The notes below the pieces were generated by a model that was not told where the DNA came from, searched no databases, and saw only the letters and a program-made list of their open reading frames with translations. From contig JBLDXI010000043.1 of assembly GCA_047495785.1 (NCBI GenBank), forward strand, positions 124,001 to 188,000: DNA of 64,000 nucleotides. The letters run 5' to 3'. Position 1 is the first letter of the stretch; every line of letters begins with the position of its first letter. A program made the translations under genes and the position numbers. Source of the stretch: Lepidodermella squamata (Eukaryota; Animalia; Gastrotricha). Below are positions 5,001-61,180 of this stretch, one piece after another.

Positions 5001-6579
5001 GAAAGTCAATGTAAATGCAGCAAGACAAGACGGTTCAACGCCGTTGCACATTGCTTCTCAGAATGGTCACTCGGATATCGTGAAGCTTCTAGCGGTAGAG
5101 CTCAAAGCTGATGCGCATGCAACAACAAAAAATGGTGCGACGCCTTTGTATGGAGCTGCTTGCAATGGCAATATTGAAATCGTGAAGCTTCTGGCTGGAT
5201 ACTTCAACTCCGATGTGCATGCAGCGAAAAAAAATGGCGCGACACCATTGTATGGGGCTGCTCGAAATGGTCATTTGGAAATAGTGAAGCTTCTAGCTGG
5301 ATACTATAACGCCGATGTGAATGCACCGCTCAATGACCGTTCTACGCCGTTATTTATCGCTGCACAGGATGGTCACTTGGAGATCACGATTCTCCTGGCT
5401 GGTAACTTAAAAGCCGATGTTAATGCAGCGACGAAGGATGGTGCTACACCGTTATACATTGCTGCTCAGAATGGTCACTTGGAAATTGTGAAGCGTTTAG
5501 CCGGAGAGTTCCGAGCCAATGTGAGAGCTGCAAAAAGAAACGGAACGACGGCGCTTTGGATCGCTGCTCAGAATGGTCACTTGGAAATCGTGAAGCTTCT
5601 AGCTGGTGAGTTAAAAGCCGACATGAATGCAGCGAGGGAAGACGATTCAACGCCGTTATTCATCGCTGCTCAGAACGGGCATTTTGAGATAGTGAAGCTT
5701 CTTGTTAGTGAGTTCAAAGTCTATGTAAATACAGTGACCATTGAAGGTGCTACGCCGTTATACATCGCTGCACAGAATGGTTACCTGGAAATTGTGAAGC
5801 TTTTGGCTGGAGAATTCGGAGCCGATGTAAGAGCACCAAAAAAAAACGGTACCACGCCGCTATGGATCGCCGCACAGAATGGTCATTTAGAAATTGTGAA
5901 GTTTTTGGCTGAAAAATTCAAAACCGATGCAAACGTTAGGAGAGAAGATGACTCGACGCCGTTATTTATCGCTGCCCAGAATGGTCACTTGGAAATCGTG
6001 AAGCTTCTAGCTGAGGAATTCAATGTCGATGTACATGCAGCGGTCAATGATGGCAGTGTTAATGACGGTGCCACGCCGTTATACGTCGCCGCTCATGAGG
6101 GTCACTTCGAGATCGTAAAGCTTCTAGCTGGCGTCTTCCGTGCCGATGTGAATGCATCGAAAAAAAATGGCGCGACCCCATTGTATAGCGCTGCTCAGAA
6201 TGGTCACTTCGACATCGTGAAGCTTCTAGCTGAAGACTTCAAGGCGGATGTAGATGCATCGCTTTATGATGGCACAACGCCTTTATACATCGCTGCTGAG
6301 AGAGGACACTTCGAAATCGTGAAGCTGTTGGCTTCATCCCTCAACGGAGATGTTAACCTGGCGAGAGACACTGGAGCGACGCCGTTGATGATCGCTTCAT
6401 TTGCTGGACACCACGCAATTGTAGATTTGCTGCTGAATGCGCATGGGATAGATGTAAATACTCGACTGCTCAAGTCCGGATGGACAGCTTTAGCTGCAGC
6501 CATGAACTGCGAGAAAAACGTGTCGCCTGGGGACAGGAGGAAAACCATCGAGATTCTACGCAAGGCTGGAGCTGTGTAA
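2049..6579 (+). CDS. Multi-exon NEK-like Ser/Thr kinase + ~22 ankyrin repeats (paralog 1)
   Basis: GSGTFG, YAVK, REE, HRDIKPEN, DFG, YAAPE and DWWSLG across GT-AG exons, including a 20-nt microexon at 3015-3034. Terminal exon ~4216-6579 has 34-aa TPLxxAAxxGHxEIVKLL repeats. Confidence 0.88.
3060..3950. repeat. Intronic insertion rich in CCGAAG/CTTCGG and CGCGCG motifs, probable non-autonomous DNA transposon
   Basis: Many ccgaagtt/aacttcgg motifs in both orientations enlarge an intron that is only ~70-100 bp in the paralogs; termini not resolved. Confidence 0.45.
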
Positions 6580-20325: not shown

Positions 20326-22603
20326 CACGTCAAGTTGCAAAATTTGAAGCACCCTAACATAGTCGCATGGTGCATTTGAAGGTTAGAGTACAGCTGACAA
20401 TATTTCCACTTAAATTCAACACTGTTCTAGGACCGTTACTTGAAATTAATGACAAGTACCAACATGGGAAAAAATGGCGCCTTGATGATGCGATGTACTA
20501 CCTCGGGATGGATTTTTATCCCGGCGGGGATTTGGAAGCTTACATGGAAAGAGTTAGCCAGGGGAATTTAGCTATCTCAGAAAATTCGCTTCGCTATTGA
20601 GCTCGACAACTGGTGTCTACCATAGCTTGCCTGCATAAATGTGGAGCACTTCATCGCGATATCAAGCCAAAGAATATTCTCCTGGGAGAAGATGGCAAAA
20701 CTGTTATTCTGGGCGACTTTGGTTTTGTTAAAATCTACTGCGAAGAGTATACATTTTCTGCTTCAGCGAGTTGAAATTGCCCCATTATTCTTCAGGTAAG
20801 GATTTATGTTTCTCAGAAAAAGAAAAAATTGGCTCTTGACTTATATGCAATATTGGGCAATCTATGTTTTTATTTGGCCCAAAAACATAACGGGGAACTT
20901 TTTGGTCGAATTAATTCTGGGCTGAAAATTTTCAATCGTTGCAAATCTAAATGAAATGAAAATAAGCACTAAATCAAATCAAACAAACAAAAGGATGGAC
21001 AGCCCTTTTTCGGATGCGGCTCAAATAATGTTGCCCTTCTGCTAAAGAAGCTCCGCGCCGCCTACATTTGACGATTGCCGCTGTTACTCCACTGAATTCC
21101 TCAACTTCATCCGCTCAATGCTAAAAGCGGACAGGCGATTGCGAGCTACTGCGAACGAATTGCATTTGAGTTCTTTTTGAGTCATGCAATTGCTGACGAT
21201 TTGTCCATGTCAACAGGAACTGCCAGCGATTGAATTTGGATGTAAACAGCAGAAACGAAGACGGCTTCACGCCACTTATGATAGCTACCCGAAACGGATT
21301 ACTCGGGCATATGAAGCTTTTGGTGGAGAAGTACAACGCTGATGTCGAAGTAGCGGACAATCTAGGCAGAACATGTCTGCACATCGCTACGAAGAATGGT
21401 CATGAAAACGTTGTGCAACTTCTCGCAAGAGATCTGGGCGCGAATGTCGATGCGGAGTCGAAAAATGGAGCAACGCCGCTATTCCTCGCCGCGAAAAATG
21501 GCCATTTTCAAATTGTTAAGCTTCTGGCTGGTGAATTTAAAGCCAATGTAAATGTAGCGACAACTGACGGAGTAACGCCTTTATACTTTATATATCGCTG
21601 CTGAAAATGGCCATCTGAGACCAAGAGATGTTAAGTACCGGATGCAGAGCTACTGATCTCCATAATACTTTTCTCGCGCCGTCGAACCATTTTTTGCAAT
21701 GCCAAAAATAGTAACATGTTCTATTTTTTAGCTTTAGCTTTACAGCAAATCACTATATATCGAAGATTTTGTTACTATTTTTAGCATTTGCAAAAAGTGG
21801 TTCTACGGCGCGAGAAAATTATTATGGAGGAGTCAGAAGTTCAGCATCCGGTACTTAACATCACTTGTCTGAGACTAGTCAAGCTTCTCGCGGGTGAGTA
21901 TAAGGCCGATGTGAATGTGAGCATCAACGACGGTTCAACGCCACTGTTTATCGCTGCTGCCTACGGCTACTTGAGAATAGTCAGGCTTCTCACGGAAGAA
22001 TTCAAAGCTGACGTGGAAAAACCTCATACCGTTGGTGCGACGCCGCTATGGATCGCGACACAGAATGGCCACTTGCGGGTTGTCAAGTTACTCGCTGGCG
22101 TTTACAAAGCTAACGTAAATGTTAGAATTAACGACGATTCAACACCACTGTTTATTGCTGCTGCCTACGATTACTTGGGGTTAGTGAAGTTGCTCGCGGG
22201 AGACTTCAAAGCCGATGTGAATGCAGTGAGGAATGACGGCGTCACGCCATTATTCGTTGCTGCTCACATGGGCCACTCGCGTATCGTAAAGATCCTGGCT
22301 GGGCGATTCGAGGCGCATGTTAATGCGGCGAGAAAAGATGGTGCCACGCCACTGTACGCTGCTGTTCAGCTGAGTCACTTGGATATAGTGAAGCTTCTCG
22401 TAGGGGGTTTTAAAGCTGACGTGAATGCAGCGATGAAGGACGGTGCTACACCATTATACGTCGCTGCTTTGAATGGGTACTTGGATATCGCAAAGCTTCT
22501 GGCAAGGGGCTCTAGAGCTGCCAAACGTTCAAGAGAGAATGATGGTACCACGCTTTCGAATGCCGATACCATGAAATACGCTCGAAAAACTCGAACATGT
22601 TGA
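20326..22603 (+). pseudogene. Kinase-ankyrin pseudogene (paralog 3)
   Basis: No first exon, in-frame TGA at 20598-20600 before [14 protein letters not shown] exon missing, frameshift near 21590 and a MITE inside the ankyrin exon. Confidence 0.8.
21622..21867. mobile_element. MITE with CAAG..CTTG termini and 8-bp TSD inside an ankyrin repeat
   Basis: TIR caagagatgttaagtaccggatgc / gcatccggtacttaacatcacttg; TSD tctgagac. Removal restores AAENGHLRLVKLLAGE. Confidence 0.88.
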
Positions 22604-24976: not shown

Positions 24977-25170
24977 ATAATACGCCGGAATAGGTGAATC
25001 ATTTTAGGCCTTTGTGCCAAGCAGAAGATGAGATAAGATAACATTTGAGAACTTCCGTAAAAAAATGCTGTGATCACAGCATTTTTTTACGGAAGTTCTC
25101 AAATGTTATCTTATCTCATCTTCTGCTTGGCACAAAGGCCTAAAATGATTCACCTATTCCGGCGTATTAT
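24977..25170. repeat. Perfect 194-bp spacerless palindrome
   Basis: 97-bp arms, centre ...gctgtga|tcacagc... between 25073 and 25074. Confidence 0.92.
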
Positions 25171-28577: not shown

Positions 28578-29392
28578 TCACAATTCGTCCTTTTTATCCT
28601 TTTTCGCAGCAGAAGCAGCTCGTTTCTTCTCGGCCTTGTAGAAGTGCGCTTGCTTCTTCGGGTCTAGCAAATCCACAATCTCCTCGCCGGATTTCCCGTT
28701 CCCAAGCGCCTCCAGCGAGTTCAAAATCGTGTTGATATAGATATTCTTGTGCAAATTGTCGTCATGCGTCTTGAACCACTCGGTGATTTCAGGCGTGAAA
28801 TAGTCCCAGAAATGCTGCATCCAACGATCGTCCGGCTTCACATTACCCGGCAGCTCTTTCAACACATTCTTCGCCCATCGATTGACGAGACCAATCGCAG
28901 CCGGGTAGAATTCGTCCTCCTCGCCAACCGCGAACGTCACCCCGGCCTTCATGTAATTCCGCCATGTTTGAACGATGGTTTTGAACAGTTTTGACGGCTG
29001 GCCGGGTCCGTCGACGAATTTCGACGCGCCCTTAGTCGGCAGCTGTTGTAGTTGGATATAGCGGTCGTGGAATCGAGCTTTCATTAAAGCCATCGATCGC
29101 CTAACATCAGCATTGGTATCCTCGCTGATACGACCAGCTTCCTCCTCAGAGTCGAGCAATTTCACGATTTTTTCAGTCATTTCTTGCCAGAAAACGTCGC
29201 GTAAGTTTCCGTCTATTTCCTCGTTTGCCATCGCTCGACGAGACCATTCATCGAGTAAATCGGCTAGTTTGCCCTTCAGCACTTGTTTGTTCTCGTTTTT
29301 GGCTCGCATTTGAGCCAACGGATGGTTGTTGACTCGAACTGCCATCAGATTGGTGATCAGATGGGTTTTGACAAGTCGGGCCCATTCCTTGA
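28578..29392 (-). pseudogene. 3' half of an ER-luminal (KDEL) protein gene interrupted by the 31.6-kb insertion
   Basis: Open frame ending KKDKKDEL-stop; joins in frame with 60977-61180 (...ESEEAT-L-KEWARL...). Confidence 0.85.
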
Positions 29393-32300
29393 TGGGGGCG
29401 CGACTCTGGGAGTTCCGAAGGAACGCCAGTTCCTTTACGCGTGTTTTACACATACGCCGTAGATTACCACGAACGAAGTGAGATTTCATCCCAACAGGGG
29501 GGCCCGAGAACGCGTTGGTTAACAGGACATACTCCGATCGACTTGCCCGATTTATGGTGGTATCCTGGACCCCTCAGGACCTCCCAGAAACTTTTTCAGC
29601 TCAATCGGACCTTCCGTTGATTTTCTAGAAATTAGGACGGTTTTTACCTATTTTACCGTATTTTTTAGTCACGTGACCTGGAATGGGTAGTATACGACAG
29701 GACAGTAGGAGGATATGATAGGTACACCAAAAAACAAACCACGCTGACCAAAGCTTCCGAGCCAGCTGACAGGCTGGCCCCTCGCCCCTGGGGGAGAGGG
29801 GCCCCACAATAGCCCGCGACAAAAGAGCAAACGACAAAAAGGCAATATAAATAAAAGTCAAGGTCGATTGAAAAAACCTGCGGCAAATTGTTTGTGCATT
29901 TTGCACATTAATCTATGGGTTTACCCGTAATCGACTACGGAGAATCCGAATATGAAATCCATTTTATTATAAAGCAATGATAACCCCATGATAATCCTTC
30001 CTAAAGTTTTCTGGCTCGCGCGGCTGCGTCGCACTCGCTGAAAGAGTTGCGTAACTTTCACCACCTAACGACGCCTCGCTGAGATATGAAACTTCGAACA
30101 AGCACAACAAGGTTTTTTCCAACATGTTCAAGCTGACAGCTAGAGTTTCGCAATACAGGTTAGTCCACAAATACAGAATACTACCTTTGAAAACCAACTT
30201 CTTTGCAATCACGGCGACATTTCATTTCTTGTGAACGATCAACAGAATCATACTTATTCGTCGTTATTCAGTCGGTATTCAGTTTTCTAACCATATTTTA
30301 TCTCATCGTTCTGGTCAAAATAACCAAATTCGCTCGGAAACCAAGTTTTTCCCACCCAAAATGGTCTTACAACAAGTCGAATATGTTCTTTACAAGGAAA
30401 TGTTTCACGTCATCAACAATTTTTTATGCTATTTACTTCAACCCTGCTTAATTTTTTACAAACATCAATCAAAACTTCCAAGTAAGATTCAACATGAAGT
30501 TCAACATTTCGCAAAATACGTTTCGAAGTACTTCGAAACTTCAACTTAAATTATATTATCCAACCTTCATGTGTTGTTCTTTGCGTTCTCGTCATCAGTG
30601 ACATCGATTCTACCAATTCATGTCATTCAATTGTTACCCTAATTTTTTTTACAACAAACTCTCGAAACTTCAAACTTTCAAAACATGGTCGTAGGTTCCA
30701 ACCCGATCTCTCCTTTTCTACTCTTCAATTTGTTCTTTAACCCTCACGCATTCGTTCTTTACGTTCTCGTCATCAGTGACATCGATTCTACTAATTCATG
30801 TCTTTCAATTGTTACCCTGATTGTTCTTTACAACAACCTCTCTAGACTTCGAAACTTCAACTTAAATTATATTATCCAACCTTCATGTTTTGTTCTTTGC
30901 GTTCTCGTCATCGGTGACATAGATTCTCCCAATTCATGTCTCGCAATTGTTACCCCGATTAATTATTACAACAACCTCTCGAAACTTCGAAACTTCAACT
31001 CAAACCTTCTTGTGTTCTTCTTTGCGTTCTACTTCTACCGTACCCTAATTTTGTTACCCTAATTGTTTTTACAACAAACAACAAACTGCAAGTTGGACAT
31101 TGCAAATTAAACACATTATACACATTAAAAAAGTCACATTATACCAAGGAATCCCTGCAAGCTTATACCAATCTGCAATAATTGGTTGAATTAAGATTCA
31201 TGTGATTCGCTGAAAGAGTTGCGTAACTTTCACCACCTAAAAACTTAAGACGCCTCGCTGAGATAAGAAACTTCCAACAAGAACTTCACAATAAGGTTTT
31301 TTCGAACATGTTCAACCTGACAGCGAGTGTGTTGCAATTCAGCTTATTCCACAAATTCACAATCCTCCATTGAAAACCAACTTGACTGAATCACCGCGAC
31401 GTTTGCTTTGTTGTAAACGATGAACAGAATCATACTTATTCGTCGTTATTCAGTCGGTTTTCTATGCGTATTTCATCTCAACGTTATGGTCAATGTGACC
31501 AATTTCGTCACCTAACGGTTTGTTTACTGCTCTCCAGGCCGACAGGAGATCATAAATTGACGATAGATACAAGAGAGCAAACGACAAAAGAGCAAGTCTT
31601 ATTACTGATAAGTTACTGTCCAAGGTCCAAGGTCGTGGGTACGAACCCAAGCTCCAAGCTCTCGTTTAACTGCTCTTCATGCTCTCGCTCTCTCAACCTC
31701 ATGTTGGCGATTTCTTCGTCACCGAGTTTAATTCAACTTATTCATGTCATTCAATTGTACTCTGATCAATTCTTTCAACAATGTTCCGAAACTGTGAAAC
31801 CTCGATAGGCAGCTCGAGGGTTCGAACCCAAGCTCTCGTTTAACCGCTCCCATGCTTTAGTTCTCAGCGTAGTCGTTATCATCGACATCGATTTAACTTG
31901 TGGATGTAATTCCATTGTACCCTGCTTAATTTGTTACTCAACTTTTTTTAAAATTTGAAATATCGAAGGAAGGTCATGGGTTCGTACCCAAGCTCATGTG
32001 AACCTTCAACATCACTCAAGCTCTGGTTTAGCTGCTCTCTAATGATATCTGTCATCCTTATACTTTTGGTCTCGGAATTATTTACTAGTGATGGTTAACT
32101 AGCGTGGTTAACAGGTAATCCGAAAACTGTTAAAAAGTACTCAAAATACGTGTAGACGACTCGGTATTAAGACGGTGTGTTCCTCTTTATTTTTATGAAA
32201 CGGTCGAAGGTTCGAATTCAACCTTTCGTTCAACTGCTTTGCGATGATTTCGTTCATTCCCAAGCTCTCATTCTCGGCATTAACGTCATTACCGACATCG

Positions 32301-35263
32301 ATTTAGTTTGCACTTGTCATTCAGTCGAACCCCGCTAAATTTTGCTCTCCAAGGAATTCTTTCATCCGTATGCTCTAGTTCTCGGCTTTTTGGTCAACAC
32401 CGACATCGAATTGCCTTTTGCCTTGTACATGGTAATCAATTGTACTCTGCTTACTTATTTATAAGAATTTGTAAGGAGCGGAGTGAAAACAAGAAGCTAT
32501 TTGCCAAGTATTGCCTTTATTAATAACGAGAATATTTAATAATACAAACTGAATCAATACAGAAACAAAGATGTTTATATATGTCCATGGAATAATCTGG
32601 AACATAGAAGGTTCCAGAACAGGAAAGTTCCAGAGCATGGAAGGTTCCAGAACATAGAATGTTCTAGATCCTCACAGAATTGTCTAAAAATTTGAAATCT
32701 CTGAGTTTGAACCCTCGCTCTCGTTAAACTGCTCTCCAACGAATTCTTTCATCTGTATGCTCTCCTTCACTGCGTTATCCTCACCGGGAACATGGATTCA
32801 ACTAATCCCAGTCATTCAATTGTACTTTGCTCAATGTTTTCAAAGAATTTTGTGAACAATTGAAATTTCAAAGTAACATCAAGGGTTCGAACCCAAGGTC
32901 ACGTTAAACTGCTCTCCTATGATTTCTGTCACCCTCGTGGTCTCGTTCTCGGCGTTTTCGTCATCCACGACATCGATTTGACTGTTATGGTCAAAGTAAC
33001 CAAATTCGTTCGCAAACCAAGCATCACCGTTGTAAATATTAGCTGAAAATATTTCAGTTCGAACGTGTAGACGACGAACATCCCATATCTTGCGTCACAC
33101 GCCGCGTTCACACGCGCATGATTGAGGTTGGAACATTTCTTCTGCCACTTTGAGGTCTTCGACTTTAAAATGATAACCCTACCAGCAATCCGTGCTAACG
33201 ATTCCGTCAGCCGGGAAAAGTTCATCTTTTTCGGACCTTCATCAGCAGGAACGATTACGTCTCATAAAAAACTAGTTGTTCCCTTCCACGGTCCCGTATA
33301 TTTCGCGTTGCAGAGATTGTGGATGTTCCCCAGCCAAAATTGAGCTTTAAAGTACAAGTTCCAAACTGCCGTATCGCGCGGGATAATCACTGCAAAGGTT
33401 TACCTGCCATTCTCGTTATCACTTCTAAATAAAGTAAAACAGTCTCGTATCAGTTTCGTTGATTTTCGATTTTCACTACATTTAAGGGAAATATATAGTT
33501 GGTGCTTGACGTACCGAAAAATGAGTGTGTAGTCTGATTCAATGTTAGGGTTCGTGTTGTTCGCTTTTAGAGCGGCGTCCTTTTCAAGCTTCACTTTCCG
33601 CCCCGTTCACTTTCAAAGGAAGGTCGAGGGTTCGAACCCAAGCTGTCGTTGAACTGCTCTCTAATGATTTCTGTCAACATGTTCTCGCTGTTGGCGATAT
33701 TTCGTCATCGACTTCAATTCAACTTCAATTCAATCCTTGTCATTCAATTGTAACCTCAACAATTTGTTTTTCTAGAAATGACCGAAACTTCGGATAGTCG
33801 TTGGTTCGAACCCAAACCCTCGTTCAACTGCTCAGCAACGATTTCTTTCATCCGTATGCTCTCAATCTTGGCGTTAACGTCGTTACCGAAATCGATTTAC
33901 CTTGTACATGTTATTCAATCGCACCCTGCTTGAATTATTATGACAATTTTTTGAAAATTTGAAAGTTAAAAGGTCGAGGTTTCGAACCCAAGCTTTTGTT
34001 GAACTGCTTTGTGATGATTTCGTTCACCTTCATGCAGCCAGAAGCTCTTGACGTCTAAATGCTGTCGTTTTCGGCGTCAACGTCATTACCGAGATCGATT
34101 TAGTTTGTACATATCATTCAATCGCTCCCTCCTTCAATTTTTATAACAATTTTCTGAAAATTTGGAATTTTAAAGGAACGGCAAGGGTTCGAACCCAAGC
34201 TGACGTTCAGCCGCTCTCCAAGGAATTCTTGCATCCGTATGCTCTCGTTCTCGGCGTTTTCGTCATCAGCAACATCGATTCAACTTATCCTTGTCATTCA
34301 ATTGTATCCTGATCAATTATTTTTAATTTGTTTACCAAAATTTGAAATTCAAAAAGAAGACCGATTGTTTGTTACAACAACCTCTCGAAACTTCGAAACT
34401 TCAGCTCAAACCTTCTTTTTTGTTCTTTTTGCGTTCTCGTCATCAGTGAGATCGATTCTACCAATTCATGTCATTCAATTGTTACCCCGATTAATTTTTA
34501 CAACAACCTCTCGAAACTTTGAAACTTCAGCTCAAACCTTCTTGTTTCGTTCTTTCCGTTCTCTTCATCAGTGAGATCGATTCTCCCAATTCATGTCATT
34601 CAATTGTTACCCCGATTAATTGTTACAACAACCTCTCAAAACTTCGAATCTTCAAAACATGGTCGTGGGTTCGAACCCGATCTCTCTTTTTTCTACTATT
34701 CAAACTGTTCTTTAACCTTAACGCATTCGTTCTTGGCGTTTTGGTCATCAGCTACATCGATTCTACTAATCCATGTCATTCAATTGTTAACCTGATTTTA
34801 CAACTTTGAAATTTTACATCTTCTCGAAATAACAATACATTAACAATAATAGGAATTTACAATCAGCTACATCGATTCTACTAATCCATGTCACTCAATT
34901 GTTAACCCGATTTTACAACATCTTCTCGAAACTTTGAAATTTTATGAAAGCGAATAAATGTTCAACTACTCTTTAACGTGCATTCTTCTCAAAATATTTT
35001 CCTAGCCATTCAATAATACGTTGGAAGGTTCCTGAGCGAACCCGAAATTACTGCTTATCTATCAAGACCTAATCCGAAGAACATTCTAATTTACAATTAA
35101 ATTTCAAATGTCATCAGCATTGGGGTGAGGGGGAAGCACCGTCCCCTCCAACGACGTGGAGGGGATCTCCAAGGGGTGGTTCGAGTCCTTACCCATTACC
35201 CAGGAGAGTAGAGAAAAGAAAGAAAAGGCTAGCGCAGCGTTAGCCTTGTGGAACTCTCCTGGA
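29393..35263 (+). mobile_element. Element A: 5.9-kb non-autonomous Helitron-like copy
   Basis: First ~570 bp match 35264-35845 and last ~190 bp match ~60793-60976. The interior is diverged satellite monomers plus a decayed accessory gene. Confidence 0.85.
33075..33605 (-). pseudogene. Decayed copy of the element's Cys-motif accessory gene
   Basis: GRKVKLEKDAALK...YTLIFR, intron, FAVIIPRD...YTGPWKG and ACDARYG align with 55680-56772 and 58247-59322; 5' truncated and frameshifted. Confidence 0.75.
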
Positions 35264-36557
35264 TGGGGGCGCGACTCTGGGAGTTCCGAAGGAACGCCAG
35301 TTCCTTTACAAATGTTTTACACATACGCCGTAGATTACCACGAACGAAGTGAGATTAACATCCTAAAAGGGGGTTCTGAAATCGAGTTGTCTACTTTCCA
35401 CAACTCCGGTGGACCTGGCCGATTTATGGTAGCATCCTGAACCCCTCAGGACCTCCCAGAAGTTTTTTCAGCTCAATCGGACCTTCCGTTGATTTTCTAG
35501 AAATTAGGACGGTTGTTTCCTATTTTACCGTATTTTTTGGTCACGTGACCGGGAATGGGTAGTATACGACAGGACAGTAGGAGGATATGATAGGTACACC
35601 AAAAAACCAACCACGCTATCCAGAGCGTCCAAGCCAGCCTACAGGCTGGCCCCTCGCCCTTGGGGGAGAGGGGCCGACAAGAGATCTACAATGGGAGATT
35701 GCGACAAAAGAGCAAACGACAAAGAGGCAAATTTATAAAAGTCAAGGTCGATTGAAAATAACCTGCGGCAAATAAATTGTGCATTATGCGTATAAAAATG
35801 CAGGTTTACCCGTAATCGACTACGGAGAATCCGAATATGACATTCATTTTGTTTTATAACAACGATAATTCCTTCATAATACGAAATTGCAACGGAAGGT
35901 CTAACCGAAGCTGTCATTTTACTCCTCTCCATCCTCAAGCTATCGGTCTCGGCGTTTTCGTCATCATTGACATCGATTCAACTTGTTAATGTCATTTGAA
36001 TTTACCTTTAAACATTTCTTAGACAAATTTCCAGGGTCAAAGGTCGCCGATTTTAACCTAAGGACTCGTTCAACTGCTCTGCAATGATTCCAAGCAAAGG
36101 TCATGGGTTCGAACCCAAACTCTGGTTTAGCTGCTTTTAATGATATATGCCAACGTTATGCTGTCGTTCTCGACGTTATCATCATTACCGACATCCATTT
36201 AGTTTGCACATGTCATTCAATCGAAGTTATCCGTGTGCTCTCGTTCTCAGCGTTATCCTTATCAGGAACATGCATTCAAATAATCCCAGTCATTCAATTG
36301 TACTTTGCTCAATGTACAGAATTTTGTGAAAAATTGAAATTTAAAAGTGTTCGAAAGTGAACCCAAGGTCACGTTAAACTGCTCTCCTATGATTTCTGTG
36401 ACCCTCATGGTCTCGTTCTATATATTTATTATTAATTTATTCGTTTATAATTAAATTTATTATTAATTTTTAAATTTCCAAAGGAAGGTCTTGGCTTTGA
36501 ACCCATTCGGCGAATTTTACTACGTAATCTATAACATAATGATTACGATAAGCCAAG

Positions 36558-39667: not shown

Positions 39668-40357
39668 ATCTGACATATCCATCGCAAATCAATTTATAAA
39701 TATTCAAAGAGAAAGAAAATAATCAAAAACAGTTTCCAGCGCCTTCCGGGAATCGAAGGCATCTCAATCACAATATAGTTTGCTTCGCTTAGGCATTGGT
39801 TCGATTACTGCTCTCATCACGTTTTTCCTTTCCATTTTTTTTTCTTAAAACAGATTAATTCCTGTCCAAATTTTTGCAGAATGAGCAATAAAAGTGGAAA
39901 CTTTTCCATTCACGTGGATTTTCATGAGTACAAAGTGCATGCCTGTCATATGGCTGACACGCGATTCAGCATCAGCTGTTTAACGGCGCAGCGGCGGCAA
40001 CATAATAAGGTTCGATCGGGTATACACTAATCATTTAAAACGATTTATTTCTCCTGAAAACAACCTCTAATTCCTTAAGCATTAGAATTACTTATGCTGC
40101 CAGCTCCAATCAATCCATCTTTCGCTTGAATCGATAACAGTGTGACAATGCTGCTGTCTCAGGTTTGCTAGTATATTATTGCTAGTTCATTTCACTATTC
40201 CCACTGTGATTACAGCTACTGGATGAAATGGCGATTTGCAGTCGGCGTTGGTTTACCACGGTCACTAATTTCAACCAGAAAGCCGTGAGTACATTTTTTT
40301 CCTCATTGATTTTATTTACTATAGTAAATTTTATTGATTTTTTCATTCATAAACACA

Positions 40358-43002
40358 TTTTTACGCTCCCTAATATTTTCTTTTATCGTCATGCTCTCGT
40401 TCTCGGTGTTCTCGCGATCAGCAACGTCGATTCACCGAATCTCTGTCATTTAATTTTACCCTCATTAAATTTTTTCAAGAATTTTTTCAAACTTTGAAAT
40501 TCCAAACGAAGGTCGTAGGTTGGTGCCCGACTTCTCGTTTTTACGCTCCCTAATATTTTATTTTATCGTCATGCTCTCGTTCTCGGTGTTCTCGCGATCA
40601 GCAACGTCGATTCACCGAATCTCTGTCATTTAATTTTACCCTCATTAAATTTTTTCAAGAATTTTTTCAAACTTTGAAATTCCAAACGAAGGTCGTAGGT
40701 TGGTGCCCGACTTCTCGTTTTTACGCTCCCTAATATTTTATTTTATCGTCATGCTCTCGTTCTCGGTGTTCTCGCGATCAGCAACGTCGATTCACCGAAT
40801 CTCTGTCATTTAATTTTACCCTCATTAAATTTTTTCAAGAATTTTTTCAAACTTTGAAATTCCAAACGAAGGTCGTAGGTTGGTGCCCGACTTCTCGTTT
40901 TTACGCTCCCTAATATTTTATTTTATCGTCATGCTCTCGTTCTCGGTGTTCTCGCGATCAGCAACGTCGATTCACCGAATCTCTGTCATTTAATTTTACC
41001 CTCATTAAATTTTTTCAAGAATTTTTTCAAACTTTGAAATTCCAAACGAAGGTCGTAGGTTGGTGCCCGACTTCTCGTTTTTACGCTCCCTAATATTTTA
41101 TTTTATCGTCATGCTCTCGTTCTCGGTGTTCTCGCGATCAGCAACGTCGATTCACCGAATCTCTGTCATTTAATTTTACCCTGATTAAATTTTTTCAAGA
41201 ATTTTTTCAAACTTTGAAATTCCAAACGAAGGTCGTAGGTTGGTGCCCGACTTCTCGTTTTTACGCTCCCTAATATTTTATTTTATCGTCATGCTCTCGT
41301 TCTCGGTGTTCTCGCGATCAGCAACGTCGATTCACCGAATCTCTGTCATTTAATTTTACCCTCATTAAATTTTTTCAAGAATTTTTTCAAACTTTGAAAT
41401 TCCAAACGAAGGTCGTAGGTTGGTGCCCGACTTCTCGTTCGTTTTTACGCTCCCTAATATTTTATTTTATCGTCATGCTCTCGTTCTCGGTGTTCTCGCG
41501 ATCAGCAACGTCGATTCACCGAATCTCTGTCATTTAATTTTACCCTCATTAAATTTTTTCAAGAATTTTTTCAAACTTTGAAATTCCAAACGAAGGTCGT
41601 AGGTTGGTGCCCGACTTCTCGTTTTTACGCTCCCTAATATTTTATTTTATCGTCATGCTCTCGTTCTCGGTGTTCTCGCGATCAGCAACGTCGATTCACC
41701 GAATCTCTGTCATTTAATTTTACCCTCATTAAATTTTTTCAAGAATTTTTTCAAACTTTGAAATTCCAAACGAAGGTCGTAGGTTGGTGCCCGACTTCTC
41801 GTTTTTACGCTCCCTAATATTTTATTTTATCGTCATGCTCTCGTTCTCGGTGTTCTCGCGATCAGCAACGTCGATTCACCGAATCTCTGTCATTTAATTT
41901 TACCCTCATTAAATTTTTTCAAGAATTTTTTCAAACTTTGAAATTCCAAACGAAGGTCGTAGGTTGGTGCCCGACTTCTCGTTTTTACGCTCCCTAATAT
42001 TTTATTTTATCGTCATGCTCTCGTTCTCGGTGTTCTCGCGATCAGCAACGTCGATTCACCGAATCTCTGTCATTTAATTTTACCCTCATTAAATTTTTTC
42101 AAGAATTTTTTCAAACTTTGAAATTCCAAACGAAGGTCGTAGGTTGGTGCCCGACTTCTCGTTTTTACGCTCCCTAATATTTTATTTTATCGTCATGCTC
42201 TCGTTCTCGGTGTTCTCGCGATCAGCAACGTCGATTCACCGAATCTCTGTCATTTAATTTTACCCTCATTAAATTTTTTCAAGAATTTTTTCAAACTTTG
42301 AAATTCCAAACGAAGGTCGTAGGTTGGTGCCCGACTTCTCGTTTTTACGCTCCCTAATATTTTATTTTATCGTCATGCTCTCGTTCTCGGTGTTCTCGCG
42401 ATCAGCAACGTCGATTCACCGAATCTCTGTCATTTAATTTTACCCTGATTAAATTTTTTCAAGAATGTTTTCAAACTTTGAAATTCCAAACGAAGGTCGT
42501 AGGTTGGTGCCCGACTTCTCGTTTTTACGCTCCCTAATATTTTATTTTATCGTCATGCTCTCGTTCTCGGTGTTCTCGCGATCAGCAACGTCGATTCACC
42601 GAATCTCTGTCATTTAATTTTACCCTGATTAAATTTTTTCAAGAATTTTTTCAAACTTTGAAATTCCAAACGAAGGTCGTAGGTTGGTGCCCGACTTCTC
42701 GTTTTTACGCTCCCTAATATTTTCTTTTATCGTCATGCTCTCGTTCTCGGTGTTCTCGCGATCAGCAACGTCGATTCACCGAATCTCTGTCATTTAATTT
42801 TACCCTGATTAAATTTTTTCAAGAATTTTTTCAAACTTTGAAATTCCAAACGAAGGTCGTAGGTTGGTGCCCGACTTCTCGTTTTTACGCTCCCTAATAT
42901 TTTATTTTATCGTCATGCTCTCGTTCTCGGTGTTCTCGCGATCAGCAACGTCGATTCACCGAATCTCTGTCATTTAATTTTACCCTGATTAAATTTTTTC
43001 AA
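40358..43002 (+). repeat. Homogeneous 180-bp tandem satellite, ~14.7 copies
   Basis: Near-identical units (ttacgctccctaatatttt...aaggtcgtaggttggtgcccgacttctcgttt) with one 4-bp insertion near 41437 and a few substitutions. Confidence 0.97.
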
Positions 43003-46200: not shown

Positions 46201-49200
46201 TTCATCTTACTAGTGTAATATTAGAAGCAAAATTTACGTTTTGAAGTTTGAAAAATCATCTAGAATTAATGACATAGATAATTAATATATATGTAGTACA
46301 TTTTGTTTTACAGTGGGCAGAGTGCTGGTCATCCACCAAGGTCAATCTCAGCTGCTGACCGAATTCCAGTCATCTCGTGAGCTGCTGATGTGCCGTCCTG
46401 AAGGTGCCTTGCCGATCCAATGGCCCGCATTGCCTTTGTCGCTGAAAGCTGGTCATCACCTTCTCCTTGCCCGCGTCAAGTTTCGCCGGAAATGCTTCAT
46501 CGTTTTTCGATGGTCACCAAGCTTCAGTGGCTGGTGGACAGTGGAGCCTAGTGGGCGAGTAGTTCGTGGTGTCAGCGGTCAGCACATGCGCTTTGACGTG
46601 GAATTTGCGATATACGCTCTGCCTGGCAACCAGACCTTCTGCAATCAAGCCGTGCGTCAATCGCTGGGTGGCCAGAGCAAGGCGGCCTGCGAAATGCACT
46701 ATGACTCCGTCGAGTTCAACTTCACCTTGATGAAAGTGCCTGCCAAGCATAAGGTGAAGTGTTGCTTCCGATTGCCGGGAAGAGCAAATCAGTGCGGCAA
46801 ACCTGCTCAATTGCGTTGTCCTGCGGGCTTGCAGAATGGCAGCATGTCGTGCAGTGTCGGCATCTGCCCGCGGTGCTTCAAAAAGCTTTCAGCGAACGGC
46901 ATCACCAAGCTCTCGGCGCCCGACTTCCTGCCTGATTTGCCTGAAGATGCTGAACTGCAACTGTCAGCTAGTAGGGTATCGAACTTGGAAGCGGAAGCCG
47001 ATGAGGTCTTGCCCCAGCCTGAGCAGCTCGATTTGGCTGCTGATATTCAATTTCCTCGAGGTGAAGTCGAGCCGCTGTATGATCCCACCAAGGGAATTCT
47101 CGCCAAGTACCTATGGCAGCACCTGGGAATTCTGCAGCGAACCAGGCTGGCTTTCGACTCTGCCCAGAAGTCGTTTCTCCTGCAGCAGATGGTCGCCTTC
47201 GGTGATGCCCCTGCTACTTCCATCTTGTATCCGGAGGGTGCCCTGTTTCCGTCGCTTTTCTATTGCCAACGTGATGGCAGTGTTGTTGGTGCTCTGCCTC
47301 ACCACCACTACTCGTCGTCGACGTCCTACAATACAGGTGGGATCGGCTCACTGTCTGACCATGTCAAAGTGAGGCTTCGCAACTTCTTCTTGGCAACAAG
47401 CTGGTCGTTTGCGTCAATCTACTTCTCCTTTGACATGAAGTTATCGGCACAGCTGAACAGCAACAGCACAGCAATTTTCATGAAGCGCGGGACAGAAGGC
47501 CTGGCGGGTAAAGGCGCGGTTGGCTGGTCTCCTCCTGGCACTGTACTGGAATACGAGGAGTTCGACAAGGAGTCGAGGCTGAAGGAGCTTGGCGCCCTAA
47601 TCAAGCATGAAGAATGGAAGTGGTTCGGGACAATTACGTGCAATGATACAGGTTTGAAGAAATGTTTATAGTATTTTAGCAAATAAGTAGTATCCTGCAT
47701 ACTTCGATTAGGTAGCAATAAGGTGGTAAGCAATTTTTAAACCAAAGTTTTTGAAAGTTTTAAATTTTAGATCAGGGTCCTGGGTTCGAACCCAAGCTCT
47801 CATTTCTTGGCTCTCTAATTTTTTCTTTCATTCTCATGCTTGCGTTCTCGGCGAATTCTTCATCGGGGATTTTATTTGTAGCTGGAATAATTTTAAAACT
47901 AATTTAGGGGGAACTTTGAACTTTTAGATCAGGGTCCTGGATTCGAACTTAAGCTATCGTTTCTTGGCTCTTGGGTCCTGGGTTCGAATTCGAACACAAG
48001 CTTAATGCAAAATTTCTATTTTCAGGCACACCTGGTGTATGTGAAATCGTGAAGGCCCTCATGATCAACGCTCAAAGGCACCATGGCCCACGCCCCGTTC
48101 TGTCGAAGGCCGACTATCAGCGAACTTTTCGTCAGCGTCTGCTCCTTGTTTCAAGGCTTGACGAGACCGAGTACAAGCGGCTGTACTACGCCCATTTCAT
48201 CCTTATCAGCATGGCTTGGCAACGAGTGCAGGAGCATCTGATCGAGTTCCTGAAGCGCACGAATGTTGTTGGCACTGTCACCACTATTTTCGTCAGGAAC
48301 GAATTTCAGAGCGAATCACTCGTTGGCAACAAAAGTCATCTGCATATGGGCATTTCAGTACGCGAAAGCCGGGCAGAACTGCTGGAGAAAGTTTGCTGTG
48401 ATCCTCGTGAATTCTTCTCGGAGCGGTACGGCACGTCATTCGACGAGCTTCAGCGCTTGAGGTTGGTCGAGAGCCGAGATCACTTCGAGCTGCTCAAGGA
48501 GGTCCATTACCCCTTCCAACGTCACGAATGCGAGAAAGCGTTTTGGAAATGTCAAGTTCCACGCGGCGAAGGAGGGGAAATGGTTTGCCGAGTTCGCCAG
48601 CACGGCGTCTCCAGCAGCGGCTATTTCGAAGAATTCCGCAACCTGTACTCCGAGGATACCCTGAAAGAGCTGCAATCCCTAGACCTCGCCAGAGAAGTGC
48701 CCAATCCCACTGGCGACTTTGACTGGGAATTTCTGGCTGATCAGCTCAAGTCGGGCGTGTACCACTACGCGATCAAGCATCTCGAGAAGGGCGTGAAGTT
48801 CATTCCGCAAATCCCGATCATCGCGGCAATGATGGGCGGCTCCACGAACTTTCAGATTTGCGATTCTCATTTCAGCGTATCTTACCTGACGAGCTACGTT
48901 GCCAGCTCCGACGCTCGCCCTGAAGCTTACGCTGCAACGACAGATGTTCCGGGCCAAGTCGTTGCTTTGTTCCCTGCTGGTTTTGAGCGAGGTCAAAAGC
49001 TTGCTAGTGTTCGGTGAGTGATATCTTTGCACTTCAATTGACTTGAAAAACTTTGATGTTTTTAGGAAAGTGATGGAAGCGAAGCTGAAGCATTTCCGTC
49101 GAGAAAGCATGCAGAGCTTTATCTTCATCGCCTTGACAGAAGTTGCCTGGTTCGCGTTGGGGTTTCCCTACACCATCACGAATGTCGGTTTCGTACACAT

Positions 49201-52200
49201 CAACACACACCCACCAGCTTTGCGGCTAATGTTGTGGCGACCAAAAGAAGCAGTGAAAAAGCGACTACCGGGTATGCTCTTGAGAATAGTTATTGTAAAT
49301 ATTTTCAAATAATATTCCAAAAACAGGTACAGATGTCGTTGCTGTCGATCCAAACTACAATCGCCGGGGCCTGCCTCAGTGGCGCTTGTTCACGGAAGCA
49401 TGCATTCGTCTGATCATGAAAATGAGAGGCACGAATCTGCAAGCTGGCCCTGTCGAGAAGTTCGAGATTCGACCTCCCGAGGCTCGTATCTTTGCGTCAC
49501 CTGCTATCTACCACGCGGTGTTCGTCATTGACAGGAAAAACGGACGACCATACAACCCGATGGTTGATCCTTACATCCGTTTTTTTGACGGCTTCAAGCG
49601 GGAGGTCCGAATCAACGATTGCAGTTTGCGCATCGCGCTCGACTATCTGGCTCAGCAGGACCAATCCAATCCAGCTGTTCAAGCACTCACGGAAATTTTC
49701 GAACTCTTGGTCGAAGGCGATCCTGTCTACGTTGACCGGTAACGAACTTTACGTTTTTATAATTTTCGGAATATTTCAATTGTACGCTGAACTAGGTATT
49801 TGCACGTCACCAATAAGGCGGCGATAATTCCAGTCCTATCCACCATCTCTCCGCTCAACCGCTTCAACTTCTTGTATCACGTCGTCATGACATTTGGTCG
49901 AATCGAAGAAGAGGCTACTACCTTTCCGGCTGGGCATCTCCGGGCGGCATTTGTTCGATCGGGGCTCATTCGGGTCAATCCTGAAGGCGAGCCGACCAAC
50001 CTTCCTGCCGACGTGAGGTCTCTGAAGCGTCGCGTCATTCTCGAAATCTTCGCTTTCCTGCCAATCGGTGTCAAGAGATTCGATTTCTACGTCGCGACTC
50101 TGAAATCCATGTTCGAGCAGTTTTTCTTTGGCGATGGAGGCACCGACAATCTCTCGACACTGACTGACTGGGAAGCGATTGAACGCGAAGTTGACGAGGA
50201 TATTGTCCGAGCGGAAGGAGAAATGAAGCGGTCTGTGGTTGAGGTGACGCATTCGCAGCTTGTCGGGAAATTGCCGCTACCACCGCTGTCGGATTTCACT
50301 GACGCTACGTCGTGTCAACCTTTGGAATGGGTTCCGAGTCTTCAACGACAACCAGGTCAGTCGGACCAGTCTTTCCAGGAGCAGCAGGCGGCTCTGGCTT
50401 TCGGTACGAAGACACTCGAACGCTTCCGAAGCAGAGCTAGCTTCAAGCACATCGCACTGGTTGGTCCTCCTGGGGCTGGAAAGACAACGCTGGCGCAGAT
50501 CCTTGCCATGGTTGCCGTTTCTAAGGGACTACGAGTTGTCATTACTGCTTTGACCTCGGAGCGAGCACGAGTTCTTGGCGGTCGGCACATCCACCTGCTT
50601 TTTCCTTTGCCGGTTAAGCAAATACCGTACAAGAATGTAATGGCGTATGCTGACGGCTGCCTCAAGAATCTGTGTTTCAAGACTACGCCATCTGTTGTCC
50701 TATATCGGGCTGACGTCTTCATCATCGAAGAAATTGGGCTGGTCTCTGCTGAAACCCTGGAAATCTTGGACACAGTTATGAGGAGTCTTACAGGTAAGCA
50801 AACCAGCATTCAATTATTACTGGTATTTATAGTTTTCATTAGGAGTCGATGCGAAAATGGGTGGCAAATTGATCATTGCTACCGGGGACTTTGCTCAGCT
50901 CGAGACGATCAATGGTGAGAGTTGATTTATTGCAATACTCACATGTATATTGTTTTTGTTTTAATTATCCCAGGTCGATCCTTTTGGGAATCAACACAAT
51001 TGTACCTCAGCTACGACGTCGCATTGTTGAAACATTTCGTTCGGGCTGCCACTGACCCGCTACTCCAGCGGGTGCTGTTGATTTTGCGCCAAGCCATTCT
51101 TGACGAGATTGACCGGGACTTCATCCTCAAAGCTGTCACTAGCACGTGCACCTTTTACGACACTTGGGACAATGTTCCGTTCCTTGTCCAGCGGATCGTC
51201 CCAACAAGAGAAGCTGAACAAGAGGTTAGTTAGTTGCGGAAAACTTTAGTGGTCAATTTTAGTGCCTTTCATGCAATAATTCATCAGGTCATTCGGAAGT
51301 TCCTGCAAGACGCTAGTCTCAGTGGCAAGACTTTGAAAACAGCTCTGTGCATCGACGAAGTGAACACGCGTGGTGCCTGGGAACCTCTTCACCGTCCCGA
51401 ATGGAAAAAAGCTATCAACAAACAGTCACTCAAGCCCGAGAACTTAACCCTCTTTGTTGGTGCTGTGGTTGCTATGACCTACAATCACGTAGCGTCGAAC
51501 CCGCAACATTCCTTCTCCCAAGGGCAGCTAGCTCTGGTGACGCAGTTGCCGGAAGACATGGCCGCACCGGATGCCAAAATTTCTGTCCGCTTGCTTCCTC
51601 CAGGGCTGCGTGACATTGCACCAGATGAGGCTTGGCCAGAAATAAGTGTGGGCCGCCATCGGGACGATAACATTGTTGTTGGCGACAACAAAACGCACCT
51701 GCGTCGTGTTCAGTTTCCGCTGCGGCATTACATTGCCTCGACTATTCATCGTGAGTGCTAACCTTGTTTTTATATTCAAGTATATAAAGATGTTAATTGT
51801 TTTCAGGAATCATGGGTTCTACCTGCGAGAACGGCGTTGCGGCCAAGATTGCTTCCAACCAGAAGGTACGTATTGCGAATAATAACTGTGGATATTGATA
51901 TGTTCAATGTACTGTAATGAAGGGCTACGTGCTATGGGAACGGGCGCAGCTTGCTGTCATTCTCTCGCGGTGCCGTTCACTTGACCGTGTGTCATTTGTT
52001 GGCGAACGCGCAGACATCACTGTGGCCATCGAAAGGCTGTTGATGGCAGTTGATGAGCCATACGAGGCTATCGTCGCATCGCTGCAAACGCTGGACGTGC
52101 TGCCTAACTCAACAGTCGCCAGTAACTGGTCAGCCGGACGACAGCAGCAGGTCAGCGTCCCCGACGAACTGCCCGACATCACGTTCCGCGTTTTACGAAC

Positions 52201-60792: not shown

Positions 60793-60976
60793 GGAAGAAC
60801 ATTCAAATTTACAATTCAATTTCATATTTCATCAACATTGGGGTGAGGGGGAAGCACCGTCCCCTCCAACGACGTGGAGGGGAACTCCAAGGGGTGGTTC
60901 GAGTCCTAACCTATTACCCAGGAGAGTAGAGAAAAAGAAAAGGCTAGCGCAGCGTAAGCCTTGGAACTCTCCTGGA

Positions 60977-61180
60977 GAGTTGCTTCTTCTGATTCGATCT
61001 TCTGATTGCTGATATCGTCGAAATAATCCTGCTCCTCGTCATCGTCATCGTCATCATCTGAACATAACATCAAACGAAATGAGGTGGAACGAGGAAAATT
61101 ACTATCAATTTACCGGCGTTTATCAAGGCGAGATGAGCGGTGAGAAGAATGCCTAGAATCAGAAAAAACCGAGAAGGCAT
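60977..61180 (-). pseudogene. 5' half of the interrupted ER-luminal protein gene
   Basis: Exon 1 61180-61114 encodes MPSRFFLILGILLTAHLALINA (signal peptide-like); 56-bp GT-AG intron 61113-61058; exon 2 encodes an Asp run then EEQDYFDDISNQKIESEEAT, cut at 60977. Confidence 0.85.

Follow-up and report, generated by a model that had tools for sequence, protein, structure and literature searches.

A Helitron-like transposon family in the gastrotrich Lepidodermella squamata that probably integrates after CTNGA and stacks behind its own CTGGA ends

In a 64,000-nucleotide stretch of the genome of the gastrotrich Lepidodermella squamata (GenBank assembly GCA_047495785.1, contig JBLDXI010000043.1, positions 124,001 to 188,000 of the forward strand, here C43:124001-188000; hereafter the window), two transposable elements lie head to tail without a single base between them. 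Element A (29393-35263) is a 5,871-bp non-autonomous member that is non-coding and packed with ~180-bp repeats, and element B (35264-60976) is a 25,713-bp protein-coding member; both, like all features below unless stated otherwise, are on the forward strand. The locus raises the question of how two such elements come to be joined so precisely, and why the host DNA ahead of A resembles the end of an element. From the window and from searches of the 121-Mb assembly, we conclude that A and B probably represent an active Helitron-like rolling-circle family, which integrates after the motif CTNGA and stacks behind its own CTGGA ends.

The junction between A and B lies at 35263/35264. The letters at 35250-35263 read ...ggaactctcctgga, and tgggggcgcgactc follows directly from 35264, leaving zero spacer between the 3′ end of A (...CTCCTGGA) and the 5′ start of B (TGGGGGCGCG). 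A B-like 5′ end is also present at 29393, with host cccattccttga (29381-29392) ahead of it, and B itself ends at 60976 with ...ggaactctcctgga (ctcctgga), next to which unrelated host DNA (gagttgc) begins. Self-comparison of the window showed that A and B have ~600 bp of 5′ region in common (29386-29983 versus 35257-35868, 86%); within it, the 5′ terminal region (LTS) of A, at 29393-29983, is 86% identical to 35264-35868. On the 3′ side, the shared region amounts to ~188 bp, with the 3′ terminal region (RTS) of A (35076-35263) being 92.5% identical to that of B (60794-60976), which also ends in CTGGA. The RTS of A is conserved in 31 places of the genome, and the 5′ end type of B (D6) is single-copy genome-wide. 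A and B are two different members of one family. An earlier sequence-only reading of this locus had described A as abutting B without a spacer, the termini as too different for a fresh concatemer of one template, and the host flank before A (CCTTGA) as resembling the element 3′ end (CTGGA); all of its factual statements on the junction hold.

To find what precedes the elements elsewhere, we searched the genome with the first 157 bases of B, which gave 28 matches; in all, 33 main-subfamily 5′ ends were classified, and their flanks were read at the loci. Another element's ...CTGGA preceded 27 of these ends, host DNA preceded five, and one was irregular. The five host flanks read aacCTCGA (C20), ttcCTTGA (A in the window), ggaCTTGA (C42), tcgCTGGA (C99, within a tRNA-like gene), and ggaCTCGA (C13). 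Position -6 before the 5′ ends is thus variable in these flanks (c, c, a, g, and a), and position -3 can be any base. The element side of the joint has the 5′ consensus TG(G/A)G..GCG, all 5′ ends reading TG(G/A)G, or ATG with the nick shifted by one base. [quoted passage not shown]

The same motif was found in front of a second, diverged subfamily, whose 5′ end starts with TGAGTGGCGCC. The pattern of CTNGA plus this 5′ end detected seven sites, four of them solo (CTCGA, CTTGA, CTCGA, and CTAGA) and three in tandem behind CTGGA. When the 5′ end was searched genome-wide without its flank, the same seven sites were recovered together with one variant copy, which is already among the five solo copies considered here, and none lacked CTNGA. 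With a junction-spanning probe, all five solo copies (5/5) started aligning exactly at the C of CTGGA and not earlier. Sites of this subfamily recorded as solo lie at C4:1784567, C4:2061215, C14:556823, C42:288286, C42:1138306, and C42:5033104. Across the two diverged subfamilies, CTNGA was therefore present at 9/9 readable host flanks, with C, T, T, G, C, C, T, C, and A as the middle base, and beyond these nine, the alignment of two more host flanks starts precisely at the motif's C. CTNGA occurs at ~0.4% of positions in host-like DNA (319 sites in ~75 kb, both strands), and the chance of nine such flanks out of nine is of the order of 10^-21. Judged from these flanks, the likeness between host flank and element 3′ end is not due to chance. 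The sequence-only reading had the 5′ end joining after a CCTKGA-like motif, and the check set beforehand was whether other copies have upstream flanks without the motif. A motif-specific target withstood this check, all nine host flanks carrying CTNGA; CCTKGA itself was over-specified, and the motif is CTNGA.

We then asked to which side of the joint the five bases belong. Among 100% identical copies, the middle base of the five bases ahead of the 5′ end is G whenever an element precedes it but can be T, C, A, or G when host DNA does, and the five bases at the element 3′ end (CTGGA) do not vary among these copies. Because the middle base varies only at the 5′ side, the CTGGA at the 3′ end belongs to the element and the CTNGA at the 5′ end to the upstream DNA. 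In the window, the host CTTGA directly 5′ of A (29388-29392, within a minus-strand host reading frame) differs from the constant CTGGA of the element 3′ ends in this middle base. CTNGA was also considered as a target duplication and ruled out, since only the 5′ copy varies and the 3′ copy is CTGGA throughout. Target mimicry past the five bases was scored against the 319 control CTNGA sites. For the five host flanks compared with the 35 nt that precede the motif at the element terminus, the summed local score gave p ~0.03 and in-register identity gave p ~0.58; likeness beyond 5 nt is suggestive only.

For the 3′ ends, a genome search with the last 164 bases of A yielded 31 matches. The terminal CTGGA of A (35259-35263) is also found at nearly all other 3′ ends; it closes all but one of the ~33 that were read, diverged subfamilies included. 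In A, it stands at the base of a nested hairpin (35200-35262), which consists of an outer 10-bp stem (35200-35209 with 35253-35262) and an inner one, also of 10 bp (35225-35234 with 35238-35247). The outer stem has CTGG at its foot and leaves the terminal A unpaired. The last 69 nt, folded as single-stranded DNA, reached -13.6 kcal/mol (z = -4.7), and 0/200 shuffles were as stable. In a diverged subfamily, the outer stem reads CCAGAA/TTCTGG in place of CCAGGA/TCCTGG; both sides have changed, and pairing is preserved. The fold of the element 5′ end was no better than that of shuffles (z = -1.5), and inspection by eye for a terminal inverted repeat, for which no dedicated search was made, revealed no more in the last 200 nt than a weak and partial complement to the first 10 bases. 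The sole end without CTGGA is a diverged one at C45:383188, which reads ...GTTCTGA and is followed by AT-rich host-like DNA. With one G fewer than CTGGA, this end, which was noted together with C45:337625, also has a broken outer stem, and it is the only array-terminal 3′ flank that was read besides that of B.

Members of the family are arranged in arrays, which we mapped from match coordinates and 3-kb loci. The arrays, among them those at C42:1.22-1.36 Mb and C20:3.09-3.19 Mb, occupy at least seven contigs and are composed of elements of 1.3-29 kb. Their 27 tandem junctions represent 23 different pairings of upstream and downstream types (98.5% clustering), and within a type, the terminal 1.4 kb on either side show 100% identity among copies. 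A-type copies of the same length and with 100% identical ends occur on C42 (twice), C20, and C33, each with other neighbours, so that the 5,871-bp element is found behind host DNA and four other types, and ahead of five or six others. One array on C33 has the arrangement [2469][28725], and its counterpart on C20 reads [2469][5673][28725], with 100% identity between the flanking elements and no chimeric termini. By its sequence, this is an empty/filled pair at an internal array junction. Because the copies within a type are 100% identical and as many as 23 pairings exist, the arrays point to recent element-by-element events rather than to one concatemer, and most of them are apparently not concatemers. 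The same identity suggests that the family is currently active and that its copies are probably still mobile. The expectation of the sequence-only reading that elements would insert behind one another is borne out by this identity, by the 23 pairings, and by the 27/33 5′ ends that follow ...CTGGA. A scan of metagenome and genome contigs with a 16-base junction pattern, which is too short for the purpose, returned chance bacterial matches only, with at most 11/20 flanking bases in agreement.

At the insertion site of A and B, a host reading frame on the minus strand is interrupted. Its first 94 nt lie at 60977-61070, with the start codon at 61070, and the remainder lies at 28578-29392; both parts are single-copy. 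Removal of A and B joins 60977 to 29392 in frame and yields a 302-codon frame that runs from 61070 to a stop at 28578, with 31 codons upstream of the insertion. This frame, which has an acidic N terminus and a KKDEL end, is split by a 31.6-kb insertion. The two host flanks, CCTTGA and GAGTTGC, have no duplicated bases in common, which means that no target-site duplication is present at A and B. The continuity of the frame is consistent with a clean insertion into ...CTTGA/GAGTT... and supports it in part.

We then examined the coding capacity of B. Its Rep exon (47971-49017) encodes an HUH-like HLH motif and, ~180 residues further on, a YxxxY pair. On the same strand and ~0.8 kb downstream lies a helicase exon (49800-50918) with a P-loop, which is PIF1-like, has Pfam AAA_30 and PIF1 matches, and weakly matches the Helraiser transposase 7lcc as well as PIF1 structures; the two exons may be joined into a single reading unit. 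Pfam analysis of the exons of B detected no Helitron_like_N (PF14214), even at E = 10, and no domain at all in the Rep exon; this exon also had no match among the sequences of solved structures, and a word-index protein search with it found no relatives. An exhaustive protein search with the same exon retrieved 123 relatives. Those of full length carry the Rep and helicase domains in one protein, and among the five longest, which were scanned for domains, PIF1 was present in 5/5, a borderline Helitron_like_N just upstream of the aligned region in 3/5, and a C-terminal GIY-YIG domain in 3/5. The protein-language look-alikes of the Rep exon are mostly Helitron_like_N clusters, which we take as a lead only. 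A genome-wide scan for Helitron_like_N detected 41 ordinary Helitron Reps, none of them in these arrays. Because B carries these motifs and its relatives carry Helitron_like_N, PIF1, and GIY-YIG, the element is likely to be a divergent Rep-helicase(-GIY-YIG) rolling-circle transposon, whose kinship to Helitron Reps is transitive, via the relatives. The Rep exon is open and 97-99% identical at ten other places, each in a 15-18-kb array member (on C42, C20, and C99). Remoter relatives of the exon (36-41% identity) are present at C64:721067, C7:3019215, C29:3523168, C64:418812, and C42:1902753, several with long open frames, and are probably other families of the same Rep-helicase lineage.

Based on the motif, the precise junctions, the varied neighbours, the copy identity, the hairpin, and the protein kinship, all of which are shown by the analysis, we propose that one nick-site consensus would act in three roles, namely initiation (CTNGA^TG...), termination (...CTGGA^), and cleavage of the target. 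During integration, the element 5′ end would be joined to DNA that carries a nick either immediately 3′ of CTNGA or inside its final two bases; the 5′ end of the displaced strand would be ligated to the 3′-OH left at the target, in one orientation and without target duplication. The element 3′ terminus would present the best version of the motif, CTGGA at the foot of the terminal hairpin. Because of this, the boundary behind a resident element would be a favoured landing site, so that new copies would stack precisely and build mixed arrays, and the intact host CTNGA ahead of an array would stay usable. From the same scheme, we infer a single-stranded circle intermediate and the order in which A and B were inserted. 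If the nick falls after CTNG, the 3′ end CTGG fits both the Helitron CTRR and the IS91 CTNG tetranucleotides.

Several observations weigh against this scheme or limit its precision. The genome contains ~1 million CTNGA sites, yet more than 80% of main-subfamily insertions are found behind elements; either recognition must therefore extend beyond 5 nt, or elements may already be joined to one another when they integrate. Sequence does not show exactly where the nick falls: because host flank and element terminus both end in GA, its position is ambiguous by up to 2 nt (CTN^GA, CTNG^A, or CTNGA^). That the Rep, rather than GIY-YIG or microhomology, reads the motif is likewise our inference. Because no true empty site was found, both host flanks of A and B being single-copy and a search for homologues of the 302-codon frame having returned none, it is frame continuity that speaks for exact integration. 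Furthermore, one 5′ end, at C99:52965, breaks the rule, as it is preceded by 31 nt of another 5′ end (...GAAGGAA). At this locus (C99:52934-52965), 31 nt of one 5′ end, which stop inside the first small hairpin, are followed by the complete 5′ end of another type. The arrangement is [X][31 nt][X][Y], and the stop point is not CTNGA; it is a candidate product of pseudo-termination, with read-through past the terminator of X and subsequent re-insertion at the leading CTGGA. Last, C42 carries four consecutive near-identical 15-kb copies with ends 99.9-100% identical, which could be true concatemers or products of unequal crossing-over, and both stacking and concatemer formation may operate.

The reader of the motif could differ from the one we propose. 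It is possible, although unlikely, that a fused GIY-YIG nuclease reads CTNGA and nicks the duplex target, and that the Rep only joins strands. The C-terminal GIY-YIG domain of Rep relatives is in line with this, but SLX1-type GIY-YIG nucleases are structure-selective, not sequence-selective, and a single enzyme that reads one motif at both donor end and target would be simpler. For Helentrons, it has been suggested that the fused endonuclease imposes a preference for targets echoing the termini (PMC4067079); here, however, the same motif ends the elements at the foot of the hairpin, where the HUH Reps of Helitrons and IS91 cleave (PMC5876387, PMC13181058). We regard it as improbable that no protein recognizes CTNGA and that the motif is microhomology on which the incoming 3′ end (...CTGGA) pairs or primes. 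The position of the shared bases does coincide with the joint, imperfect microhomology would likewise leave the middle base free, and similarity to the 3′ end extends further in 3/5 flanks. Nevertheless, the four fixed positions are invariant in 9/9 flanks, whereas microhomology usually varies in length and register; insertion is strictly oriented, and the extended similarity, marginal when the local scores of all five flanks are pooled and not significant by the in-register measure, is out of register in two flanks.

Other explanations concern the arrays and the boundary itself. An origin of the arrays as rolling-circle concatemers, or as segmental duplications that unequal crossing-over between conserved termini has since shuffled, is quite improbable as a general account. 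Head-to-tail Helitron arrays of bats have been given such an origin (cited in PMC2267711 and PMC5876387), the C42 row of 15-kb copies has the expected appearance, and the termini are conserved enough to recombine. Against it stand the 23 neighbour pairings spread over at least seven contigs, the 100% identity within types, and the lack of chimeric termini; A and B, moreover, have no other elements beside them in a unique host gene, C20 has an entire element that C33 lacks between otherwise identical neighbours, and the CTNGA at solo insertions is left unexplained. Finally, the boundary might be misplaced, so that the element would start with CTNGA and would in fact end in ...AACTCTC. A five-base shift of this kind keeps both the tandem junction string and the open host frame, but it conflicts with the middle base, which is G behind an element and any of the four bases behind host DNA even in 100% identical copies, and it needs a host CTGGA behind the last array element every time, which makes it highly improbable. 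Integration after CTNGA by the Rep, with stacking behind CTGGA, is the reading that we prefer over these.

The repeats carried by the elements deserve separate mention. Within B, the region 40355-43000 contains ~15 tandem copies of a 180-bp unit that are 99-100% identical; further copies, older and diverged (60-80%), occur dispersed in A and B and around 60.0-60.7 kb. A tRNA B-box-like GGTTCGAACC is part of the unit. These 180-bp repeats look like satellite DNA that is carried and spread by the transposon, as in oyster Helentrons. Outside the elements, the window contains a perfect 207-bp inverted repeat pair (23317-23523/24575-24781, 1,051 bp apart) and, adjoining it, a perfect 194-bp palindrome (24977-25170, two 97-nt arms without spacer), both unrelated to A and B. 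It also contains a 764-aa open frame made nearly entirely of ankyrin repeats (4285-6579, DNA period of 102 bp) and, 16 kb downstream, a related, short block of repeats (22109-22510).

How Helitron-like elements choose their targets and recognize their ends is poorly understood, and the known eukaryotic classes offer only a dinucleotide as target. The present family has a target of five bases, the same as its own terminus, along with dozens of precise junctions and 100% identical copies, and CTGGA/TGGGGG together with the nested hairpin is a concrete substrate for cleavage and integration assays. If our reading is true, each copy makes a preferred landing pad for the next, and the mixed head-to-tail arrays with their carried satellite would be a programmed outcome of the mechanism, not an accident. 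The family would then provide a mechanistic link between eukaryotic elements and IS91, and a self-assembly route for mixed arrays with 180-bp satellites. Annotation tools that assume A/T or T/T sites, or a Pfam Rep match, would miss it. In the literature searched, which did not extend to Repbase and subscription journals, we found no eukaryotic Rep-helicase element whose five-base target equals its terminus, nor one with near-obligate mixed arrays; precise head-to-tail junctions of unlike Helitrons have been described in maize, and tandem ones in bat (PMC2267711, PMC5876387).

By broad criteria the family is Helitron-like, with an apparent HUH motif, two tyrosines, a PIF1-like helicase, no target duplication, and a 3′ hairpin. 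The eukaryotic classes are defined by their insertion, between A and T for HLE1 and between T and T for HLE2 (PMC11417382, PMC13085455). With HLE1 (e.g., Helraiser), the family shares the Rep-helicase, asymmetric ends, a hairpin a few bases before the 3′ end, and the absence of target duplication. In contrast to HLE1, which starts with TC and inserts between any A and T, the elements here start with TG or ATG and need CTNGA, and the inferred empty site of A and B (...CTTGA/GAGTT) does not correspond to insertion between A and T. For the 3′ CTGGA to fit the HLE1 CTRR, its last A would have to be part of the host or of the 5′ end. The Rep of the arrays, unlike that of HLE1, is not matched by Pfam Helitron_like_N, and its relatives carry GIY-YIG. 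With HLE2 (Helentron/Helitron2; HINE/DINE-1), the family has in common the combination of a Rep-helicase with an extra endonuclease, as well as internal satellite-like tandem repeats (PMC7492417), and the echo of the termini in the target recalls what was proposed for Helentrons (PMC4067079). The endonuclease of Helentrons, however, is of the APE type, while that of the relatives here is GIY-YIG, a domain noted once in an HLE2 family (PMC11417382). Moreover, HLE2 insertions lie between two T residues in T-rich DNA, and HLE2 termini bear short inverted repeats; in the present family, the flanks end in A, the elements begin with T, and the 3′ flank of B begins with G. Thus, the family is Helitron-like by protein but matches neither HLE1 nor HLE2 in the features of terminus and target that define them.

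The closest functional parallel is found in bacteria. In the IS91 family, the tetranucleotide targeted beside oriIS (CTTG/GTTC) is a close relative of the site cleaved at terIS (CTCG/GTTC), and adjacent DNA is co-mobilised by read-through of the terminator (PMC13181058). The analogy to an IS91-like, end-resembling target that was drawn from the window alone is accurate in this respect, with a CTNGA flank standing against a CTGGA terminus (cf. PMC13181058). Like IS91, IS801, and IS1294, the present elements insert in one orientation and without duplication directly 3′ of a short motif, and the letters CT-N-G are alike. In contrast to IS91, which is bacterial and has a transposase without helicase or GIY-YIG, the family is eukaryotic, has a PIF1-like helicase and a five-base motif, and occurs predominantly in arrays. 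It works like IS91 but is no member of IS91/ISCR. Taken together, these comparisons raise the possibility, which we put forward tentatively, that the family is a third structural kind of eukaryotic Rep-helicase transposon, defined neither by A/T nor by T/T insertion, in which a single CTNG(A) consensus serves initiation, termination, and integration.

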